Positions 24,458 to 55,393 of a DNA stretch of 64,000 bases are shown here, one piece after another; position 1 is the stretch's first letter, and each line of letters opens with the position of its first letter. The position numbers and the translations under genes are program-made. The stretch is from assembly GCF_011386835.1 (NCBI RefSeq), contig NC_088791.1, positions 88,846,001 to 88,910,000 of the forward strand. Reading direction: 5' to 3'. This DNA is from Chrysemys picta bellii (lineage: Eukaryota). Below the pieces are notes generated by a model. The model did no database searches. It worked only from the letters and a program-made list of their open reading frames with translations, and was not told where the DNA came from.

Positions 24458-25941
24458 CTACCCGATTGAAGAAACCCACAACTGGCTGTGAAGGCCCCTT
24501 TCTACACAAGCAAAGGATGGGAAGGTTTCCAAAGACACCAGAGATTGCTTTAGCTATCTGTCAGTCAAGCAGAGGTATAGGCAAGCAGCAATTGACTGGA
24601 AGATCTGTCAATACAAGTTAAAAACAGTTCAACCCCACCCTTTCTGGTGCTGAGAGGAAGGGTGGAGTCTGTTTGAATATAGAGCTCCCTCCCTGCAGTG
24701 GCAACTTTAGTTGTCTGCAAATTCTTTAAAGGGAAGGATTTGTTCAGCTGAGTCACTCCCTCAATCAAAGTTCTGCCACTAGGTCAAGAAACCTTGGTAT
24801 CATTCGAGCCATGAAAACTGGTGAGGATGTATATGTGCCCAGACAAGGTAGACATTTACTGGAAAAGGGGAGATTTTTAATTTATGGTTTGTGGTGGTGG
24901 TGTTACAATTGAATACACAACAGTATGTGAGGGTGACAGACAGGCTATGACAAATTACCGACCCATGTGATAAATAAATGTACTGTGCCTCTGCCAACTA
25001 GTCTAGCTCCCCAGGGACTTATTCAAACATTCTGAACCCATGAGCAGTTTCCAACAGCCTTATTAACTTTCCTAACCTCCCCAGACCCCCTCAAATGTGG
25101 AATTCCCAGCCCCTTCCTCCCCTCCCCCTCCCCCCAAAAAAGACACCTGCCTGATGCAGAGAAGATTCATCCTGGACTATTGACAGTTTAGCTATACATG
25201 AAAATGTCATGTCTTTAAACTCTGATACCGTATCTCACATCCTGTTGATTAGGCAAGAGGGGAAGGTTGATTCCTACCATTTGCTTCTAGTCCTAGACGG
25301 GCCTGAAATAATGGGCTTGGAGATCATGACGTATTTAGTTCCCTAAAAGCTGTTTTAGGTGATTTGTGGGGATGTATTACATGTGTTAGTTACATTTTTC
25401 TCTCCCTCTCAGCTTGATACTTTGGTCTCGTTGCAGGCTGGGTTCTGTTCTGCACATCACTAGGCATAGCCCAGAACAGGGGCTTCAGTGGGGGAATGGC
25501 GACTTAATGCCATCTCTGTGCTGCCCAAATGTTGAGCTGTTCCAGGGACCAGTGGGGTTCTTAGGCCTTGTCTACACTACGAGAGTAGTTCGATTTTACT
25601 TGCATCGAATTTTTGTAATCGATATTGCAAAGTCGAACGTGTGTGTCCACACTAAGGACAGTAATTCGACTTTGTGCGTCCACACTAACGGTGATAGCGT
25701 CGACATTCGAAGCGGTGCACTGTGGTCAGCTATCCCACAGTTCCCGCAGTCCCCTCTGCCCATTGGAATTCTGGGTGTAGCCGGCAATGCCTTCTGGGTA
25801 ACAAAATGAGTCGAGGGTGCTTTTGGGAAACTGTCGTCATCCGTCCATCACTCCCGCCCTCCCTCCCTGAAAGCGCCGGCGGGAAAACAGTTCGCGCGCT
25901 TTTCCAGTCATTGACAGCGTGGACGCCACTGTACTCCGAGC

Positions 25942-27225
25942 ATGGAGCCCGCTGCGACCATCGCTGCAGTTGTGGCCGCTCTCAACGTCTCGCAGCTTAT
26001 CATAAAGGTTTCCCTGAGGCAGATGCAGAAAAGTCAGGCGAGGAGGCTACGGCACCGCGGTGATGTCCTGAAGTCTGAGAGTAGCACAGACCTGTCAGAA
26101 AGCAGGCGACCCAGCGCCGAGGACATCACAGTGGCAATGGGTCATGTTGATGCCGTGGAACGGCGATTCTGGGCACGGGAAACAAGCACTGAGTGGTGGG
26201 ACCGCATAGTGCTGCAGGTCTGGGATGAATCCCAGTGGCTGCGAAACTTTCGCATGCGGAAGGGAACTTTCCTGGAACTTTGTGAGTTGCTGTCCCCTGC
26301 CCTGAAGCGCAGTGACACCCGGTTGCGAGCTGCACTGAGTGTACAGAAGCGAGTGGCCATAGCCCTGTGGAAGCTTGCAACGCCAGACAGCTACCGGTCA
26401 GTCGCGAACCAGTTTGGGGTGGGCAAATCTACCGTGGGGGTTGTTGTGATGCAAGTAGCGAAGGCAATCGTTGATGTACTGCTGCCAAAGGTAGTGACCC
26501 TGGGAAACGTGGAGGCGATCATAGATGGCTTCGCAGCGATGGGATTCCCAAACTGCGGTGGGGCCATAGATGGAACTCACATCCCTATCCTGGCACCGGA
26601 CCACCAGGCCACCCAGTACATTAACCGAAAGGGATACTTTTCCATGGTGCTGCAAGCACTGGTGGACCACAGGGGACGTTTTACCAACATCTACGTGGGA
26701 TGGCCGGGCAAGGTTCATGACGCTCGTGTTTTCAGGAACTCTGGTCTGTTTAGACGGCTGCAACAAGGTATTTACTTCCCGGACCACAAAATAACTGTTG
26801 GGGATGTGGAGATGCCTATAGTCATCCTCGGGGACCCAGCCTACCCGCTAATGCCCTGGCTCATGAAGCCCTATACTGGCGCCCTGGACACTGAAAAAGA
26901 ACTCTTCAACTACCGGCTGAGCAAGTGCAGAATGGTGGTGGAGTGTGCTTTTGGCCGTCTCAAGGGGAGATGGAGAAGCTTACTGACTCGCTGTGATCTC
27001 AGCGAAACCAATATCCCCATTGTTATAGCAGCTTGCTGTGTGCTCCACAATCTCTGTGAGAGCAAGGGGGAGACCTTTATGGCGGGGTGGGAGGTTGAGG
27101 AAAATAGCCTGGCTGGTGATTACTCACAGCCAGACAGCCGGGCGATTAGAAGAGACCAGCGGGAAGCGCTGTGCATCCGGGAGGCTTTGAAAGCAAAGTT
27201 CCTGAGTGAGCAGGGTAACCTGTGA
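25942..27225 (+). CDS. Harbinger DDE transposase (HARBI1-like), intact, 427 aa
   Basis: WLRNFRM, HTH region (ALWKLATPDSYRSVANQFGVGKSTV), GAIDGTHIP, GKVHDARVF, ILGDPAYPL, RMVVECAFGRLKGRWR; no stops or frameshifts. Confidence 0.96.
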   Translation: MEPAATIAAVVAALNVSQLIIKVSLRQMQKSQARRLRHRGDVLKSESSTDLSESRRPSAEDITVAMGHVDAVERRFWARETSTEWWDRIVLQVWDESQWLRNFRMRKGTFLELCELLSPALKRSDTRLRAALSVQKRVAIALWKLATPDSYRSVANQFGVGKSTVGVVVMQVAKAIVDVLLPKVVTLGNVEAIIDGFAAMGFPNCGGAIDGTHIPILAPDHQATQYINRKGYFSMVLQALVDHRGRFTNIYVGWPGKVHDARVFRNSGLFRRLQQGIYFPDHKITVGDVEMPIVILGDPAYPLMPWLMKPYTGALDTEKELFNYRLSKCRMVVECAFGRLKGRWRSLLTRCDLSETNIPIVIAACCVLHNLCESKGETFMAGWEVEENSLAGDYSQPDSRAIRRDQREALCIREALKAKFLSEQGNL

Positions 27226-27980
27226 CTTTATAGTTTGTGTACTGAGAAGCTAAACCTGCCCCCGTTTCTTTACCCAGGTAATGTTGACTATCCTATCCAG
27301 TTACATACCCCCTTCACCCCCCCTCCAACACACGTGTCGAAATAAAAATAGTTCTACTTTGTTAAAGCACACCGTTTTCTTTAATACTGTTTTCGCGGGA
27401 ATTTTTTAAAACTGGGACGCAGACTGTGGTGCGGGGCGGGTGTAGTGTTGTGACGCGAATGCAGCTTCTAAACTCAAGGATTGACAGGCTCCGCTGTGGT
27501 GGGATGCTTGTTTCAACGGAGCCTGTCAACCCTCCTGATCGGGACTGTGTGTATGGGGGGTCTATTTGACTTTGTGGCAGGGGGAGGATGGTTACAGATC
27601 CCATGCTGTGTGGCTCTGTGATCCTGCCTAAGGACCGGCGCTTAAGATCTGTAACTGCCCTCCCCCGCCACAAAGTCACAGAGCAACCCACCCCCCCCCC
27701 CCCCAACATTACATCAAAACAACCTCCCAGACTAACCGGGGCAACTAGTCACTGCATCACTGCACTGTGTATGTGCCCTGCTGCTGTGCCTGCCCCCGAC
27801 TATGTACCCTGCCAAAGGAGACTGTCCTGTCCAATTACCAACCCCCTTTCCCCTCCTCCTCCAAAAGAACATGATTGAAACAGTAGTTAACAGAAACGAA
27901 TTTTTTATTATCAACTACACATGGCATTGGGAGGTGAAACTTGGACGGGGGCTTGTGTCAGGCGGGAAGGAAAGAACTTT

Positions 27981-30027
27981 TCAAATTTTGGGAAATGAGA
28001 GCCTTCTGCTACTAGAGCTCTCTGCAGGGGTGGAGTGAGACTTAGCAGGGACTCTGCCGCCTCTCCTTCTTTGCACTTTGGGTGAGGTGGGTATGGGACT
28101 TGGTGGCGGGGGAGGGCGGTTAGAGATGGACTGCAGCGGGGCTCTGTCCTCCTGCCTCCGTTCCTGCAGAACATCCACAAGGCACCGGAGCGTGTCCGTT
28201 TGCTCCCTCAGTAGTCCAAGCAGCGTTTGAGTCGCCTGCTGGTCTTCCTGCCGCCACCTCTCCTCCCGATCCATGTTGGCTTGGTGCATTCGGGTCAAGT
28301 TCTCCCGCCACTGGGTCTGCTGTGCTGCCTGGGCTTGGGAAGAGGCCATAAGCTCAGAGAACATGTCCTCCCGTGTCCTCTTCTTCCTACGCCTAATCCG
28401 CGCTAGCCTCTGGGAGTGTGATTCCAGGCTAGGTTGTGAGACAGTCGCAGACGGGGCTGTGGAAATGGGAAAAAGGGAGTGAATTCCTCAGAAAGATAAA
28501 TGTAGTTGTGAACAAAGAACATAGTCTTTCTCTGTGAACAAGACCATGCACAGCACCTTTCACATGCGCACTCAGCACAAGGTCGAATTCTCGGCCTTCG
28601 CATTCAGTGCCTGGGGTCTTGAACAGCACATTTGAGAAGCGAGGCAGCACAACGGAATTTCTGTTGCAGGCAGACATGGTAAGCCGTACACTTGTGGCAG
28701 TTTAAAACTTTTATATTACCACTGGCCTCATTTCACATTTAAATCAATGTCAGTCCCTGCTGCCAGCAATCCGGCAAGCGGGAACTCTGCCCCTGTCCCA
28801 CCCCCTCGCGGCTGTCCCCGGGAACGATCCCTTTCGGCTGCCCCTCTCCCGCCTCCACCGCGTGGCTGCAAACCAGCGGTTACAGTTCTGTAAAGGAACG
28901 GGAAAGCAGTCCCAACACTAACATTCCCCTACCTAATTAAAAGCAGGTCACCATGGCCGACATCACCCTGATGAGGATCTCCGAGAGCGACAAAGAGAGA
29001 ATGCTCCGGGAAAGCCTCCAAAGACCAGGGCCGTATGCCACCCTGCTGTGCAGAGCAATGATCCCCGAGTACTTGATAATCTCGTGGCGCGGCAACGTGT
29101 CGTACTTCGGAGGACCCAATAAGGCCGCTCTCCCCAAGAACCTCATGCAACGGCTTTCAAGTTACCTCCAGGAGAGCTTCATCGAGATGTCCCAGGAGGA
29201 TTACTGCTCTATCCCCGGACACATAGACCGCATTTTACTGTAGCTGCAGTAGCAGGGAATAAACAGTAGAGCGGCTTGTGCAGGACAATCACTGAAAACC
29301 GGACATTGCTAGATTTCTTTTCAAAACTTGCACTGCCCCTTACTAAACCGTTAAGCGCCTAGGGCACACTAATCATGAACAACCCATTCTTTTAATTGTT
29401 AATATTCCTGTTTTGTTAAAAATAAATGTTTAGATGTTTACAACACTTACTGGCTGATCCTTCACCAGATTCTGTGTCCGGGGTAACGGCTGGGGACGCT
29501 TCGTAGGGGATCTCTGTAAGGGTGATGAAGAGATCCTGGCTGTCGGGGAAATCAGCGTTGTGAGAGCTGCCGACTGCCTCGCCCTCCTCATCTCCTTCCT
29601 CATCTTCCCCGTCCCCTAACATGTCCGAGGAACCGGCCGTGGACAGTATCCCATCCTCAGAGTCCACGGTCACTGGTGGGGTAGTGGTGGCGGCAGCACC
29701 GAGGATGGAATGCAGTGCCTCGTAGAAACGGGATGTCTGGGGATGGGATCCGGAGCGTCCGTTTGCCTCTTTGGTCTTCTGGTAGCCTTGTCTCAGCTCC
29801 TTGATTTTCACGCGGCACTGCGTTGCATCCCGGCTGTATCCTCTCTCTGCCATGTCTTTAGAGATCTTCTCGTAGATCTTTGCATTCCTTCTTTTGGATC
29901 GCAGCTCGGAAAGCACGGACTCATCGCCCCACACAGCGATGAGATCCAAGACTTCACGATCAGTCCATGCTGGGGCTCTCTTTCTATTCCCAGACTGCAC
30001 GGCCATCACTGCTGGAGAGCTCTGCAT
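27981..30027 (-). CDS. Harbinger Myb/SANT-like DNA-binding protein, two exons join(30027..29451, 28456..27981), 350 aa
   Basis: Exon 1 has RKRAPAWTDREVLDLIAVWG...CRVKIKELRQGY (Myb/SANT, trihelix type) and an acidic tract, ending at CA|GTAAGT. Exon 2 follows TTCCACAG|, with basic RRRKKR and a coiled coil. 577+476 = 1053 nt, in frame. Confidence 0.92.
28676..29243 (+). CDS. Third Harbinger gene of E1: ~99-aa BEN-domain-like protein, join(28676..28678, 28947..29243)
   Basis: ATG|GTAAGC donor at 28676-28684; CTAAT...AAGCAG| acceptor at 28946; open exon VTMADITLMRISESDKERMLRESLQRPGPYATLLCRAMIPEYLIISWRGNVSYFGGPNKAALPKNLMQRLSSYLQESFIEMSQEDYCSIPGHIDRILL*; AATAAA at 29421. Homologues at the same position in E2 and E3. 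The BEN call is by eye. Confidence 0.75.
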
Positions 30028-31089
30028 CGTTGCCAGTGCTGCTGTGCTCGCCACGATGTCCAGACAGGAAATGAGATTCAAACTGGCCAGACAGGAAAAG
30101 GAATTCAAATTCAAATTTTCCCGGGGCTTTTCCTGTGTGGCTGGTCAGAGCATCCGAGCTCGCACTGCTGTCCAGAGCGTCAACAGAGTGGTGCACTGTG
30201 GGATAGCTCCCGGAGCTATTAGCGTCGATTTCCATCCACATCTAGCCTAATTCGACATGGCCATGTCGAATTTAGCGCTACTCCCCTCGTCGGGGAGGAG
30301 TACAGAAGTCGAATTAAAGAGACCTCTATGTCGAACTAAATAGCGTCGCAGTGTGGACGGGTGCAGGGTTAATTCGATTTAACGGCGCTAACTTCGACAT
30401 AAACGCCTAGTGTAGACCAGGCCCTAGAGTAAGTTACAGTATCCCAGGGGCTGTGCTAGTTTATACTGCCTGCAACAGCTTCATATGGAATAGCCAGAGT
30501 ACAGCATGCTCTAGCCACACTCCCTGCTGCACCAGGCCCACTAGCGACATACACCTATGGCATGGGCTGCAATGGGAGTTGTCTGTTATACCTCTGTAGG
30601 ACCAGGGGGGAATGCATTGCATCAGGGGAATTATCAGCTTGGGGAGGATCTAACTGGGTTGTCCCCTCTTTCCTCCACCAGAGAAGCATAAAGGCTGTAC
30701 CACGTCCCAGAATCAGAGCCCTGATAACCAAAGCACCTGGTTTTGTATGGGGAGGGATACATAAAATCGTGTGTGCGTGTGTGTACTCTGCTCATACTTC
30801 CCCACATTCCAATTAACTTCACTCTCATTAACTCCCTTGATGTGCAGCTCACTCATTAACCAATTATTTTTTCCTGTGATTAACATTGCTAACTAGAGGA
30901 TCTAATTCAGTTCTTCTTAGACAGTCTCTGCCTAATATGTTAAATAAAGACTATGCAACATTCTTTGATCATGGAACAAAGGAAACGGTTACATTCCATA
31001 TTGCAAAACCAGCACATAGTTCGGTAGGATGGGCAGTCTTTGATGTGAATAGGCCTATGACTGAAACAGCAGGGGATGCTTCAGTCAGG

Positions 31090-47338: not shown

Positions 47339-47799
47339 CTAGCCTGAGTGGTGGAACAGGGTGTTGATTGACTCCCTCACTTCAAGGGAATCTCCGTCAG
47401 AGATCTCCATGAAACTCTTATGGAGATACTGGGCAATCCGCTGCCGCAGGTTCTTTGGTAGAGCTGCTTTGTTTCTTGCCCCATTGAGGGTAACTTTCCC
47501 ACGCCACTCTGCCATCACGGGGGGGGGGGGGGGGGGGAGAGAGACCATTGCTGCACACAGGCGAGCCACATAGGGGTCAGGGCAGAAGCCGCACTCTTGG
47601 AGAAGACCCTCCCTTGATTCCCTGCTCACCTTCAGCAGCGAGATATCTTCCAAGATGAACACAGCCTGTGGAAAATGTGGGGACAGGAATGATTATAAGG
47701 CCCCCCCCTACAGTGCTGGCTCTCCCCAAGAGCCACGTGCCCAGTGTACAGTACAGTCCTGGAATACGGATTTTCCCTGCCCCTGAGGTTACTCACCAT
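47339..47799 (-). CDS. Third Harbinger gene of E2: BEN-domain-like ORF, join(47799..47797, 47665..47339)
   Basis: AAATG|GTGAGT donor, TTTTCCACAG| phase-0 acceptor, open exon AVFILEDISLLKVSRESREGLLQECGFCPDPYVARLCAAMV...WRGKVTLNGARNKAALPKNLRQRIAQYLHKSFMEISDGDSLEVRESINTLFHHSG*. Confidence 0.7.
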
Positions 47800-48651
47800 T
47801 TGGGGGGTCTTGTGGTTCATCTGTGCTTGCCTGGGGTCATCCAGTTAGTGACTGGTATGTGAAGAGTGAATGTGTTTTAAATCAGTGGTCTATGTGTTGC
47901 AAACAATACTGTTTCTGTAAAATGTTGCATTTTGGCTTCACAGATACGACCTTGGGAGCCCACCCTCCCTCTTTGTTATTGCCGGCTGAACGGCTGCGCA
48001 GAATTAGAAAGCGGCAACAAAAAGAATTAAAGAGGACTTTCTGCGTGATGTCATGATGCACTCCGCAGCCGAAAAACAAGAATTGAAGGATTGATGGGAC
48101 AGCGAGAAGAGTGACCAAAAGGAGAACGTGGCGTGCCAGAACGAAGCCACACAGTGGCTCTTAAACATTATGGAATGCCAAGCAGACACGCTCCAGGCAC
48201 TACTAGCACGCCCACCCTCCCCTGCAGCCGCTGACGCATGCGCCCCCCCAGACACCGCCAGCACACCCTTATCAACCTCCTGGCTCCAATCTGTACCCGC
48301 TGCAGACCACTCCTGCCCCGTCACAGTCCAGCCCTGCAGACTCCCAGTACCCACTGCACTCAACACCAGTCCCTCTGCAGTTTAACCCTGCTGAAGAACA
48401 GTACTCACTGCACTGTACTCCAAAGGACAAGGTTGGATATGATACCTGGACATACACAAATCTTTAACCATCCCAGGACCCCGCCTCCTCCTGGGACCCT
48501 CCCTTCCCCCATCCACCTCAGTGCTGATGTGCAAACAGAGCCCTGCAAAGCAACAGGCAATTTTCTTACACCTTCACAGTGCATCGTCTGCATCAATCAC
48601 AATCACCGCCTAGCATTACAAGCACTGCACTCCTGAGCATAGCAACAAATA

Positions 48652-49877
48652 TTAGTGGCTTTCAGCTTCAAATTGCTGCCTCAAGGCATCCCTGATCCTT
48701 ATGGCCCTGCACTATGCCCCTCTAATAGCCTTGGTCTCTGACTGTTCAAATTCAGCCTCCAGGCACTGAGCCTCAGTGGTCCAGCCCAGAGTGAAGCTTT
48801 CACCCTTCCCTTCACAAATATTATGAAACATACAGCACATGGCTATAAGCATAGGAATATTGTCATTGGCCAGGTCCAGCCTCCCATATAGACAGTGCCA
48901 GCGGGCCTTTAAAATGCCAAAAGCACACTCCACAGTCATTCTGCACTTGTTCAGCCTGTCGTTGAACCGCTCCTTGCTGATGTCAAGGTGCCCCATGTAT
49001 GGCTTCATAAGCCACGGCATTAAGGGGTAGGTGGGGTCTCCCAGGATCACAATGGGCATTTTGACTTCCCCTACGGTGATCTTCTGGTCCAAGAAGAAAG
49101 TCCCTGCTAGCAGCTTCCTGAACAGGCCAGTGTTCCAAAAGATGCGTGCGTCATGCACCTTTCCAGACCAGCCTGCGTTAATGTCTGTGAAATGTCCACG
49201 GTGATCCACAAGCACCTGGAGAACCACAGAGAAATACCCTTTCCAATTAATGTACTCAGTGGCTAGGTGGTCTGGTGCCAGAATTGGAATATGGGTGCCA
49301 TCTATTGCCCCTTCACAGTTAGGGAAGCCTGTTTGTGCAAAGCCATCCACAATGTCACACACGTTGCCCAGAGTCACAGTCTTTCGGAGCAGGATGCGAT
49401 TAATGGCCCTGCATACTTCCGTTAACATGAGTCCAACAGTCGACTTTCCCACTCCACACTGGTTAGTGACCGATCAGGAGCAGTCTGGAGTAGCCAGTTC
49501 CACAGTGCAATCGCCACGCACTTCTCCAGCGGCAGGGCAGCTCTCATTCTCGTGTCCTTGTGCCACAAGGCTGGGGCGAGCTCATCATACAGTCCCATGG
49601 CTTTCCTTCTCTGAAAATTCTGCAGCCACTGCTTATCATCCCAGACGTGCATGACAATGTGATCCCACCACTCAGTGCTTTCCCAAGCCCAAAAGCGGCA
49701 TAACACTGTGGCCAGCACCTCCATGAATGCCACAAGCAATCTCGTGTCATAGTTACTATGCGTGGGGAGATCAATGTCGAACTCCTCTTGCCTTTGTAGT
49801 TTAAGGAATAACTCCACTGCCACTCGTGACGTGTTAAAGACAACGAGCAACATATTGGTCAACAGTGCGGGATCCAT
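48652..49877 (-). pseudogene. E2 Harbinger transposase pseudogene
   Basis: MDPALL...WWDHIVM...GAIDGTHIP...KVHDARIF...ILGDPTYPL...MTVECAFG; frameshifting deletions near 49450-49700 and a TAG at 48712. Confidence 0.9.
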
Positions 49878-52800
49878 TCTTGCAGACCGAAGAGGCAGAG
49901 TGCGCAGTACACAAGGGTTGAAAGATGGTGCCAAATGCAGACAGAAGCACAGGGATTGCTGCCATGAGAAGCAATGCATCATGGGGCATTGGAACAGGAC
50001 CCAGGATGCCCCGCGACCTCCTCCACCTTCCCACAACTCTTAGCGGCGGAAGAGGAAGAGATGCTCTGTGGGATAGCTGCCCAGAGTGCACCGCTCCGAA
50101 TACCGTTGCAAGTGCCGCAAGTGTGAACACGCTATTGCACAGGCAGCTGACAGTGTGAACACACAACAGCAGTTTCCTTTCAGCGCTCTCCGAGCGGCGC
50201 TATAACTGCCGGCACTGTAACTCTGCCAGTGTAGACATACCCGGAGCAACAATAGGGAATAGGAGGTTTAGTAATTGCCCTAACACTCTGTGTAACACTG
50301 CTCATTTGCTAGTCTGTCCTCCCCTAAACTGAGCCTGTGGGGGTAAGAATGTAGCTGCTTAACCTAAAAATAGACCAACCTTGTATGATGATTGAACAGG
50401 ACTGAGTACAGACAGTGTCTAACCCAAAGGAAAATCACCAAACTCCTTTCAATTTCCAGCCTAATATAGATTTTAGATACTGTAGTTTGAGGTTTCTCCA
50501 TTTGCAAGGCAACAGAGACCTAATTTTGAACACACAAGTAATTGTTAGAGGTGGTTATTTCTTACTTGAAATCTTTGAAGTGTCAATTTTGAAGGATACT
50601 AAAGCAGGGGTATAACTTCAAGCCATGTTTCCATGAGACTGCTCCCATGTTTAACATTACACACCTGCTTATGTACCTTCCTAGATCTGGGCCTCAGTTT
50701 CCTTAATCACCTAAGGCCAGAGTGATACCCTTCCTCACACTAGTCCTGTACTCCACAAGTAGCCCCACTAACTTCAAGGGAACTATTCACTGTGTAAGAT
50801 TCTATTCAGTGCAAGTGCATCACAGCCTGGCCCTTAACTATATAAATCATATGTATCTATTAGCTGTATTTACACACAACTGTCTGTGCCAGACATCACT
50901 TACCTTTGGACCCGATTGACGTAATGTTTATGTTGGTAATGAGAAATGCCATTGGCTGTTTTGCAAAGGCAACGTACTCCCCTGGTTCTGTGTATTGAAC
51001 TTCTGCTTTTGTTCTTTCCTTTGGTTGTCTTTTAAGTAAAGTCAATAACAGCCACCTATGGGACTGCTAATGTGACTGATTTACAGAGATGTTGAGCACC
51101 ACAGCACCCACTGACTTCAACGAATGTTGAAGGTGGTCAATGCCTCTGAAAATCAAGCCCTATGGCCATAACGCTGCCAAAAGCACTGAGGGAGGCATAT
51201 TTGATAACTGCACTTAACAGCCTGATACCAAAACTTTCAGATTGTCTTCTGTACCAAACATGGTGTTAATTTTTGCTTTATATAAAGGATTCAGAGTATG
51301 AAGTTGGAAAAAGCAAAACGAAAACAAAGAGCTTTTCACCCGATCCAGGCCCCTTTTCCAAAAATATTTGATTTTTCACGTATAGGGTATCTTGCTGGTG
51401 TTAATCCAATTTTGGAGCATCCAAAGATAGACAATTGCTTCTGTGAAGAAAAGTCACTATTTCTGCCCCAGGTCTGAAAGTGACACAGTGGATCTTACCA
51501 GAGTATTTTTTCCAACCCTAATCTTCTATGATTCTGTGATTCTGCCCTTACAATAGAGATGGAGGCCTCAATTTTCCTGCAGTAAGTGGTAATTAATGTC
51601 CATTTCTCTGTGATTTTTCACCAGTGGAAGAGGAAAACTATGATTCAGTAGGTGGCATAAGTTATGTTTGTGCACTGTACTTGGTTATTTCCATATGTTC
51701 CCATCCCAAGACAAACAGCACTCCTTTATCCTATTTAATCAGTAACTAATTATTGAATCTTCTGATGGATATTGACTGGTAATTTATGTAATGTAGCTCT
51801 CCTGGAACTCTGTGGAAAACAAATTCAACAGAAACCCTACAGACTTGCCAAGTCTCACTCAAGGCTAGATTGTAAATGTGACCTACATTGCCATTCAGCA
51901 AAGTATGGGGACATAAGCCTCCCTGTCTCCACACACCCACACCCACTTTCCTCTGTACAACCATGCAGGATCTACCTGGATCCTGAGTCTGGGTAAGGGG
52001 GCGGGGGGGAAGCAGGGGCTGTCTGAAACTCTTTTTCTCCCCTCCACTAACAAGTGAGTGGTGAGGGGGCCTTGGCAAAGCCATGACTCCCCCGCACCAT
52101 TCCGAACATCCCCAGCCAAGAGAACTGGCTGGACAGGAGCTGGCAAGTGTGTTGTGTCTGGCAATGGCCTGACAAGTACACTCCCTGTGCCTCTCACTCT
52201 GTGTGAAACCGGAGATCTGGAGGAAATGTGATTCAGAGCAGTGTCTTTGAGTTACAGTGACTTCCTGGGGTGGTGCAGCTCCGTGCTTCCCCTTCCACAG
52301 GACTCAAAGTAAACTCACCATCTCACTCTGTCTTAGAGGAGACTCTTTCATTCAGGACTCATTTTAAGACATTTTCATAGTATCTCCTAATCATGAAAAA
52401 TTTGCTGTGTATTTCAGTGAAGCATCTTGTTGTTGCACGTCAGCTATTCCCGGCTGCCAGAATGGCCTCCTGCAGCTGTGAGCAGCCAGGTATAAATGAG
52501 AGCCCCCTTTGGCCTATTCTAACTTACATCAGGAGTTGACCTGGCCCCTGGCTGGTTCCAGAATTGGGGAGCTACAAAGGTGGCATACAGCCACCATTAC
52601 TCCGCCATACCAAGTCAGCCCCCAGCTCGGCACAGCCAGGCCCAAGAATCAGGGACTGTATTTACTGGGGGAGGGAGGAGGACTTAGATAAAATAAAATA
52701 AATATACATAGACTGAGGTGCACTGGTAGAGCGGTGTGGTGACAAGAGACTGGAATAGAAGGTGTCCTGAAGCTGAGCCTTTAGGAACATAGACCAAATT

Positions 52801-53626: not shown

Positions 53627-55393
53627 ATGCCTCCACGTGCCAAGCAAGCCCCAGCATGCAGCAATGGCGAGTTGCTGGACCTCATCAGTGTTTGGGGGGA
53701 GGAAGCTGTCCAGTCCCAGCTGCGCTCCAGCCGTAGGAATTACGATACCTTCAGGAAGGTATCAAAGGACATGATGGAAAGGGGCCATGACCGGGATGCC
53801 CTGCAGTGCAGGATTAAAGTGAAGGCGCTGCGGAGTGCCTACCGCAAAGCCCGCGACGCAAATGGCCGCTCGGGTGCTCCCCCCATGACCTGCCGATTCT
53901 ACAAAGAGCTGGATGCGATACTTGGGGTTAACCCCACCTCCACTCCGAGCACCACCATGGATACTTCAGAGCCGGGGTGGGAAGAGGAGGAGGAAAATGG
54001 GAGTGAGGGTGGTGAGGCGGATGGAGACACCCCGGAATCCCTGGAGCCAAGCAGCCAGGAGCTCTTCTTGAGCCAGGAGGAAGGTAGCCAGTCGCAGCAT
54101 CCGGTACTTGGTGGAGGACAAACAGAAGAGCAGGTTCCCGGTAAGCGGGTTTTTTTTCGGGAAGGAATTTTTTCGGTGCGGGCTCTTTGGGAGAGGAGGG
54201 TTAGGCATGCATGCCTAGATGTGGAATAGTGCATTGATGTGGTTTATCACATCGCGGTAATCGGCCTCGGTAATCTCTTCGAATGTCTCATCCAGAACGC
54301 GTGCAATGCGCTTGCGCAGATTTATTGGAAGAGCCACCGTGGTCCTTGTCCCAACCAGGCTAACGTGTCCACGCCACTGTGCCGCGAGGGGCGGGGGGAC
54401 CATTGCTGCACACAGGCAAGCTGCATATGGGCCAGGGCGGAAGCCGCATTGCAGTAGAAGACCCTCCCTTGCTTCCCAGGTCACCCTCAGCAGCGAGATA
54501 TCGTCCTGTGGAAAATGTTGGGACAGTGTTCAGTGTAGGTGCCCCCTGCAGCTGTCGGCTCTCCCCAAGGCACAGAAACCCAGAGGACAGCACAGCCCTG
54601 AAACAATCAGTCCCCCTTACTCACCATTTTGAGGCTCCCGTGGGTTATGTGTGCTCTGTTTGGGACGGGAAAATTATGCTATTGTGTAGACCCTGTGTGT
54701 GCCTTCCTTCAGTGCGGCGGAAATCATTACTCTGTCTGCTATAAACAATGCTGCCTCTGTTAAATGTTGCATTTTGCCTATACAGCTGCAACAACCTTGA
54801 GACCTCAGCCGTCCCTCTTATCGCCTGCTCAGAGACTGCAAAGACTCAGGAAGAGACGGCGAAAAACCAAAGAAGACCTGCTGCAAGAAGTGATGCAGCA
54901 ATCTATTAAAGAGAATGAAAAAGCACAGAACTGGAAGGAGACAGAAAGCAGGATCCGCCAGAAAAACGCAGCGCACCGGCAGCAAAGCACAGATCGGCTC
55001 ATAAGCATCCTGGAGCACCAAGCAGACGCTATCCAGGAGCTCGTAGCCATGCAAAAGGAGCAATACCGCAAACGCCCCCCCCCACACACACAGCCCTTGT
55101 CCCAAAACTCTTTCCCTTGTGCCCCACTGTTACCTCCAACCCACTTTCCCCAACTTCCGTGTTCTTCACGCCACCAGCTGTCTCCAACACTAGTATCTTC
55201 ACCACCCAGCCCTGAAAACCATGACCCTTACCCTCTGCACTCAACCCCCATCACCATGCAGTATAGCTATTCTGAAATGCAGCACTCACTGCACAGCACA
55301 CCAGACAGGGCATACACGAATCTGTACCGTTCCCCACTCCACCCCCTTGCCCTTTCTGATACCCAAGCAGTTGTGTTTCTTTTCAATAAATAA
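53627..55393 (+). CDS. E3 Myb/SANT-like protein, join(53627..54140, 54786..55393)
   Basis: MPPRAKQAPACSNGELLDLISVWGEEAVQSQLRSSRRNY...CRIKVKALR; donor CCG|GTAAGC; acceptor TATACAG|; phase-1 intron keeps the frame. The conserved Trp appears as Cys (PAC versus PAW). Confidence 0.8.
54215..54627 (-). CDS. Third Harbinger gene of E3: BEN-domain-like ORF, join(54627..54625, 54505..54215)
   Basis: AAAATG|GTGAGT donor, TTTTCCACAG| phase-0 acceptor, open exon DDISLLRVTWEAREGLLLQCGFRPGPYAACLCAAMVPPPLAAQWRGHVSLVGTRTTVALPINLRKRIARVLDETFEEITEADYRDVINHINALFHI*. Confidence 0.72.

Follow-up and report, generated by a model that had tools for sequence, protein, structure and literature searches.

All three Harbinger transposons (E1, E2 and E3) in a 64,000-nucleotide window of the turtle Chrysemys picta bellii (RefSeq assembly GCF_011386835.1, contig NC_088791.1, positions 88,846,001 to 88,910,000, forward strand) carry a stop-free exon of 288-324 nt on the strand of the transposase. 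This exon, termed ORF3, is probably part of a genuine protein-coding gene, the third in the Harbinger transposons of sauropsids, and its product of about 96-100 aa would consist of one divergent BEN-fold domain. PIF/Harbinger serves as the textbook example of a DNA transposon with two proteins; to our knowledge, all reconstituted Harbinger systems consist of a transposase and a Myb partner. Two recent Harbinger surveys likewise give two proteins per element and mention neither a BEN domain nor a third ORF. An earlier note on this DNA had called the third gene new; in agreement with it, the literature search, which did not extend to Repbase entries, found no paper that describes such a gene or links Harbinger with a BEN domain or a third ORF.

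Exon structure and coding potential of ORF3

In E1, the proposed gene lies on the + strand. Its start codon (28676..28678) forms the end of exon 1, has an A at -3 and a G at +4, and is directly followed by the donor GTAAGC. The proposed intron (28679..28946, 268 nt) contains a CACTAAC branch-point-like site and a pyrimidine tract and ends in tandem acceptors (AAG|CAG|, the bar marking the splice boundary); both 28944 and 28947 are possible phase-0 starts of the exon. The coding exon (28947..29243, + strand) specifies the BEN-fold domain of 98 aa; it contains an ATG at 28953 (ACCATGG) and ends with the stop codon TAG at 29241-29243. Two AATAAA motifs follow on the same strand, at 29258..29263 and at 29421..29426. 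The latter, inside the Myb intron, is 178 nt past the stop, where the earlier note had given about 180 nt. The E2 gene (47339..47799, - strand) is built alike, with ATG 47799-47797|GTGAGT, an intron at 47796-47666 and an exon at 47665-47339, as is the E3 gene (54215..54627, - strand), with ATG 54627-54625|GTGAGT, an intron at 54624-54506 and an exon at 54505-54215. In the ORF3 of E2, a poly-C expansion adds a proline run. The exons of E1, E2 and E3, their upstream ATG|GT sites and their phase-0 AG acceptors all lie, on the transposase strand, exactly where the note had placed them.

The sequence ATG|GTRAG, with a purine at -3 and followed after 137-448 nt by a pyrimidine tract and a phase-0 YAG, is common to four lineages, namely the E1 subfamilies, the Malaclemys family L040, E2/E3 and an old 'VTLCDITLL' lineage, so that the proposed first exon ending in ATG proves to be conserved in all four. 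The ORF3 introns of E1 and L040 cannot be aligned by blastn. In the E1 clade, the 9-mer of ATG plus donor is 100% conserved, compared with 84-92% identity for the intron around it. This clade also has ACCATGG three codons into the ORF3 exon. In E2/E3 and the old lineage, no ATG occurs close to where the coding exon starts, so that the upstream ATG is needed. The conservation of the ATG and of the splice signals supports a two-exon model, in which we infer the splice from the ATG exon itself. According to this model, the gene would comprise a short 5' exon ending exactly in the start codon (ATG|GTRAG), then an intron of 120-450 nt and then one coding exon that begins at a strong phase-0 acceptor and reaches to a poly(A) signal, which in E1 precedes the Myb exon.

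The ORF3 peptides of E1, E2 and E3 are 39-56% identical and share 26 invariant columns. As the earlier note had pointed out, NKAALPKNL is identical in E1 and E2 while 6 of its 9 codons differ synonymously, and W-R-G-x-V behaves in the same way. Among the ten lineages and copies compared, only the ORF3 frame is stop-free throughout, each of the other five frames having stops in nearly all; since no other frame is open in all ten, the open ORF3 frame is beyond chance. Between the young E1 subfamilies (E1, L051, L053, L055, L052 and L056), dN/dS is 0.16-0.29 (Fisher P 4e-7 to 7e-5), and the differences are distributed over codon positions 1/2/3 as 10/7/23, 6/6/19 and 13/13/26. E1-type copies compared with Malaclemys L040 give dN/dS values of 0.16-0.18 at a nearly saturated dS of 1.1-1.5. 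Copies of an old, decayed lineage have values of 0.56-0.82, matching neutral decay after the death of a copy. Judged from these sequence comparisons, purifying selection on the protein is what preserved ORF3 in all turtle Harbinger lineages examined, and the dN/dS between active subfamilies bears out what the earlier note had read from the codons.

In amino-acid identity between E1 and E3, ORF3 (41%) ranks below the transposase (63%) and Myb exon 1 (48%) and above Myb exon 2 (30%); ORF3 is therefore conserved about as well as the Myb partner. A first look at the genome yielded 15,575 candidate places for the ORF3 exon, many of the copies intact, and more than 100 of the 150 scored E1-family copies share an identical top score and have no stops. 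Because the E1 family is very young and abundant, such intactness within the family is uninformative, and it is the comparison between lineages that carries the argument.

Fold, relatives and phylogenetic spread

The AlphaFold model of the ORF3 domain, obtained with the family alignment as input, has a pLDDT of 96.2, and BEN structures are its top matches. In the PDB, Foldseek ranks BEND3 BEN4 first (TM 0.73, rmsd 2.1), together with BEND3 BEN3, NACC1 and BANP. In an exhaustive VIA search of 48,161 chains, the top five matches are all BEN representatives (BANP, Z 8.9; BEND6, 7.8; BEND3 BD1, 7.8; NACC1, 7.2; Bsg25A, 7.2), and the sixth has a Z of 4.3. The matching AFDB clusters include many 'BEN domain-containing protein' entries at a probability of 1.00, the top feature clusters of a language-model search of the ESM atlas carry PF10523, and hhalign aligns the 46-sequence family alignment with five BEN domains of the same turtle genome (BEND3 and others) over 75 columns at a probability of 86.8% and an E of 4.3e-6. 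As far as predicted structure can tell, ORF3 is a compact, divergent BEN-fold domain of about 90 residues, mostly helical and with a short hairpin ahead of the G-K-x-x-L segment. The BEN assignment made in the earlier note is thus supported by fold search, profile-profile comparison and language-model search. It does not extend to the Pfam family BEN (PF10523, gathering score 23.2 bits), which 14 of the 46 family members match below threshold, with a best E of 0.0026; P0028 scores 20.8 bits, and any other Pfam family matches at most one member. Because it stays below the curated cut-off, the domain is filed as BEN-fold and not as a member of PF10523. A search of the whole genome with PF10523 found BEND3-type genes and no Harbinger exons.

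With the known BEN proteins (BEND3, BANP, NACC1, BEND6, Insensitive and Elba/Bsg25A), ORF3 has the fold in common (Z 8.9-7.2, TM up to 0.73, 78-95 residues aligned), and in the hhalign alignment their G-x-x-G/N-K-x-x-L-P/D core aligns with it. Drosophila Insensitive is, like ORF3, a small protein of essentially one BEN domain. It differs from them in that ORF3 is below threshold in Pfam, has 9-19% identity to these proteins, is encoded by a transposon and has copies of nearly neutral charge. Among named proteins, the best structural match is Xenopus laevis Protein Pat (Xpat, O73622), whose residues 186-280 superimpose at a TM of 0.91 and an rmsd of 1.2 over 96 residues (26% identity, E 1.7e-7), both structures being predicted models. 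In Xpat, as in the fish relatives, the domain occupies the C-terminal end. Xpat, a host protein of 293 aa, belongs to germ-plasm particles whose content of RNA has not been demonstrated (PMC3827131), and the same paper describes no link of Xpat to a transposon or to DNA binding.

A profile (HMM) of the three peptides matches 116 proteins among 1.84 billion representatives. The close matches are chimeric turtle models; the distant ones have the domain at the C-terminus of fish, coelacanth and frog proteins, after a coiled coil or after KRAB zinc fingers, SAP-SPRY or ATF7IP domains. UniRef labels two fish members 'BEN domain-containing protein'. Fusions in the distant branch include P0084, P0089 (frog Pelodytes), P0097, P0072 (Hoplias) and P0064 (Denticeps), where the domain is C-terminal to C2H2 zinc-finger (KRAB in P0089), hnRNPU-like (SAP-SPRY) and ATF7IP-like proteins; these are either real fusions or annotation joins. 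A word-indexed protein search with the 96-aa ORF gave no matches, because the close relatives sit in longer chimeric models beyond its length window, and an exact look-up of ORF3 found no record.

An ORF3-like frame comes after a Harbinger transposase, in the same orientation, at an alligator locus (L066) and in a Logan contig (L065). A tree built from 74 domains unites every turtle Harbinger ORF3 in one clade (support 100/98), nested in a sauropsid clade (100/96) with the alligator sequence and an exon shared by turtle and gecko host genes. The fish, coelacanth and frog proteins fall on the other side of the tree. At L059, the locus of a fish relative, there are no Harbinger genes within 10 kb, and therefore no Harbinger link was found for the fish family.

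Transcripts, gene models and capture by host genes

Transcript evidence consists of contigs from four runs labelled 'RNA?' (X1, X3, X14 and X10), which come from four studies and from unknown tissues. Mapped to E1, such contigs drop rare forms, so that a missing joint is not evidence of absence. The contigs of all four runs join about 28451-28456 to 29451 and thereby outline the Myb gene intron (28457..29450, - strand, 994 nt, phase 1, GT..AG), with the donor AG|GTAAGT at 29451|29450 and an acceptor made of a pyrimidine tract and CAG. The coding part of Myb exon 1 (29451..30027, - strand) contains a Myb/SANT domain (Myb_DNA-bind_4, PF13837, E 1.1e-21), and that of exon 2 (27981..28456, - strand) has its stop codon at 27981-27983. 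The whole ORF3 gene, with its ATG, intron, exon and both AATAAA motifs, lies within this intron on the opposite strand, and the RNA-derived junctions hence substantiate for E1 the antisense nesting that had been proposed. The Myb gene is convergent to the transposase ORF (25942..27225, + strand), which codes for 427 aa with a DDE_Tnp_4 domain (PF13359, E 3.3e-37). With this transposase and a Myb/SANT gene whose exons are spliced in the contigs, E1 is a PIF/Harbinger element.

E1 extends over 25565..30424 (+ strand), with terminal inverted repeats of 16 nt (GGCCTTGTCTACAC... at 25565-25580, the reverse complement at 30409-30424). The flanking triplets, TTA and CTA, are not identical, where a 3-bp TWA target duplication is expected, and repeat-derived contig depth over the element begins at about 25474. 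A perfect 14-nt subterminal inverted repeat (AGCTATCCCACAGT / ACTGTGGGATAGCT) occupies 25728-25747 and 30195-30208, at about 165 and 215 nt from the respective ends. In two runs, contigs connect 30202 back to 25747 through 11 additional letters, and this joint may come from internally deleted or rearranged E1 derivatives. The transposase of E1 is 63-66% identical to those of E2 and E3, and E1 is consequently a different family, as the earlier note had held. E2 (47339-50036) is degraded, its transposase being split into overlapping ORFs at 48712-49452 and 49422-50036.

In run X10 alone, a minor - strand joint (CT..AC ends) connects 28456 with 28933 at a depth of 26, compared with 258-479 for the main Myb junction. 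This joint implies an alternative - strand Myb exon overlapping ORF3 in antisense, and antisense ORFs of 69-121 aa are present in E1 and E3. It could be argued from this that the conservation belongs to something other than ORF3, either such a Myb exon or a cis-acting element of the intron. The chance of this is minute: the other five frames have stops in nearly all lineages, the ORF3 frame translates into a fold predicted at pLDDT 96 with clear relatives, and the 116 database proteins match the profile in the ORF3 frame. By the stops and the profile matches together, this explanation comes close to refuted.

A second alternative makes ORF3 an alternative 3' exon of the transposase gene, so that the product would be a short protein of transposase N-terminus and BEN fold, like truncated regulatory isoforms known from other transposons. 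Transposase and ORF3 exon indeed share a strand, with the exon downstream, ORF3 directly follows the transposase in contig L065, and several models join the two (P0013, which is RefSeq LOC128825970 isoform X2 of Malaclemys, and P0009, P0005, P0036 and P0040). However, the donors vary among these models, and several of the models derive from old decayed copies or from ab initio annotation. The donor of the P0013 type is weak and unconserved (E1 CAG|GTCTGG, E3 GAA|GTCTGG, E2 CAC|GTCTGG), in contrast to ATG|GTRAG, which is conserved in all lineages. A joint from the transposase to 28944/28947 is likewise absent from the contigs of the four runs. Because the donors differ by model and are not conserved between lineages, the fusion form is ranked as a cryptic or minor isoform, and as the principal product of the exon it is unlikely.

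Two sets of records were set aside. Logan contig L041 (P0032, 'MDDITLW...'), considered as a spliced cDNA, is unspliced DNA, its 'M' being a TTG chosen by a prokaryotic gene caller, and the starts of P0018, P0020 and P0037 call for the same caution. The Chelonia model P0012 does have a join of an ATG exon to ORF3; it was left uncounted, being a 32-kb model from the first Chelonia mydas draft (GCA_000344595.1).

Many host gene models terminate in the ORF3 exon. Chimeric turtle RefSeq models of this kind include TEDC1, a protein kinase, PFKFB, Rab-3C isoform X3 (Chrysemys) and a glycine-transporter-like protein (Mauremys). They use the acceptor at 28944, which gives the junction '...QVTM...'. 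At the level of gene models, the ORF3 exon is shown to act as a strong 3'-terminal exon that captures host transcripts. The only RefSeq model that encodes little beyond ORF3, Malaclemys XP_053865786.1, starts about 1.2 kb outside its element and is spliced over the whole transposase directly to ORF3. Its first exon (L040:8001-8078) lies in sequence resembling a Harbinger end (MITE-like), and Harbinger ends may carry promoter activity.

Trapping might then be the relevant activity itself, the exon ending host transcripts and fusing a BEN domain to them from an element that has no internal promoter. Besides the chimeric models and the outside start of XP_053865786.1, the lack of an internal splice in the RNA contigs and a KDM4-like fusion conserved between turtle and gecko would agree with this. 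A trapped fusion is in frame only one time in three, though, and brings the element no obvious gain. A conserved Kozak-like ATG exactly at the donor is useless to a pure trap, and E2/E3 and the old lineage, which have no in-exon ATG, are reliant on that upstream ATG. Trapping as the sole function is accordingly very improbable.

The KDM4-like fusion involves a single-copy exon of the turtle genome (G000:C25:9412733-9413020) that has an open ORF3-like frame, 74% identical to gecko; in comparison with Gekko kuhli, dN/dS is 0.16 at a dS of 1.0. About 1.4 kb upstream, on the strand of the host exon, is a decayed Harbinger transposase (G000:C25:9410527-9411325, residues 76-373, with stops), and further upstream in this locus (G000:C25:9401499-9413020, L061-L064) are KDM4-like exons, which match a Gekko japonicus RefSeq model composed of JmjN, JmjC and an ORF3-like domain. 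The gecko orthologue of the turtle exon is the C-terminal exon of models P0035 and P0119 (JmjN, JmjC and a BEN-like domain). Because the next downstream gene in Gekko kuhli has PHD and Tudor domains, the host exon seems to lie within a KDM4-type gene. The gecko locus has no transposase remnant, and a tblastn hint of a Myb remnant at the turtle locus (E 0.074) was not confirmed by the Myb profile. From synteny and gene models, it is somewhat more probable than its contrary that an ancient Harbinger inserted here, that the host gene took up its third-gene exon as an alternative terminal exon, and that the host has retained this exon since.

Counter-evidence, known systems and possible roles

Several results weigh against a third gene encoding a BEN protein. 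The junction 28678^28947, predicted in the earlier note, does not occur in the contigs of the four runs, which show the Myb splice, drop rare forms and cross both ORF3 splice sites unspliced. Compared nucleotide by nucleotide, the ORF3 exon shows no stronger conservation than the intron beside it (82-89% vs. 84-92% identity), and its dN (0.065-0.15) is only slightly under the non-coding distance (0.08-0.24). The low dN/dS derives in part from an unexplained 2-4-fold synonymous excess: dS of ORF3 (28953-29240 compared with L051-L056) is 0.34-0.53, which exceeds the Myb dS of these element pairs by a factor of 2-3.7 and the non-coding distance of the flanks by a factor of 2-4; its dN is about that of Myb. 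The three window peptides have no match to Pfam BEN, even at E values up to 10, and a profile search of PDB sequences returned no BEN chain, only chance-level TFIIA matches at E >=0.1. Finally, the transposon copies are near neutral (net charge -2 to +3, compared with +16 for the turtle host exon and +3 to +15 for the fish relatives), and DNA binding is therefore not assured.

The synonymous excess is absent from very close pairs. CpG decay was rejected as its cause, since transitions and transversions number 18:22 and 10 of the 40 changes are in CpG context. The excess could stem from recombination between subfamilies that gave the ORF3 segment an older coalescence, from selection favouring synonymous change, or from constraint at the DNA level elsewhere in the element.

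Because 28678^28947 is unseen and the exon is, in some models, spliced to the N-terminus of the transposase or to exons of host genes, a stand-alone gene, as the earlier note had it, is something we infer. The dN close to the non-coding distance would also suit a host BEN-like exon carried as a passenger, with no role in the element and conserved only through the youth of its copies. The E1 family is indeed young enough for intact ORFs within it to prove nothing, with its more than 100 stop-free copies tied at the top score, and fish, coelacanth and frog have related BEN-like domains in host-type proteins that lack a Harbinger close by. Yet the exon stays open across lineages at synonymous saturation (dS >1.3), its start codon and splice signals are conserved as well, and its changes are strongly skewed to third codon positions. 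ORF3 accompanies the transposase in alligator too, and dead copies do decay, both in dN/dS (0.56-0.82) and by acquiring stops. A mere passenger is, in our judgement, quite improbable.

E1-E3 share with canonical PIF/Harbinger elements such as zebrafish Harbinger3_DR the DDE transposase, the Myb/SANT-like partner and the terminal inverted repeats. Unlike those two-gene elements, they would have a third conserved gene, antisense in the Myb intron. Accessory genes are known from other DNA transposons, namely mudrB of MuDR and TnpA/TnpD of En/Spm. Like these, ORF3 would be an extra element protein beside the transposase that occurs in part of a superfamily only and whose function is difficult to deduce; it differs in superfamily, in fold and in its layout within the intron of the partner gene. 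Fusions of host and transposon by exon capture are also familiar (KRABINER and other host-transposase fusions, SETMAR). The gecko JmjN/JmjC and BEN-like model and the turtle exon look alike to these in their capture by splicing. What was captured here, as known from gene models and synteny, is the domain of an accessory gene and not the DNA-binding domain of a transposase.

By analogy with Insensitive, Elba, BEND5/6 and BANP, the ORF3 protein would most likely be a small accessory factor that targets DNA or chromatin. Bound to element DNA or to chromatin, it might tune the expression of transposase and Myb, tune the assembly of the transpososome, or counter silencing, options that are equal on the evidence. 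Because the transposon copies are near neutral in charge, a role as protein adaptor, like that of BEND3 BD1, is kept as a live alternative. Complex prediction of ORF3 with the transposase, Myb exon 1 and Myb exon 2 gave a score of 0.00, which is evidence neither way.

A more far-reaching proposal is that true three-gene Harbingers employ ORF3 as an Xpat-related factor for germ-line targeting or shielding, that exon capture has repeatedly seeded host genes, including a KDM4 demethylase-BEN isoform predating the turtle-lepidosaur split, and that the synonymous excess results from an arms race at the RNA level. In the arms-race variant, ORF3 would be the only part of the element with transcription from both strands, with escape from small-RNA silencing as an example. 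In this extended form, the proposal is doubtful.

If ORF3 is indeed a third gene of Harbinger transposons, current accounts of their targeting, of their regulation and of their protection against silencing would be missing a component, at least for reptiles, whose genomes hold this family in great abundance. For a divergent branch of BEN proteins there would be a concrete origin, tied to Xenopus Xpat. At the same time, a terminal exon borne by a transposon appears to be rewiring host genes now, as in the Rab-3C, TEDC1, PFKFB and kinase models, and seemingly did so in the deep past too, as in the KDM4-like gene of turtle and gecko. This would be a kind of host-transposon fusion in which the transposase is not involved.

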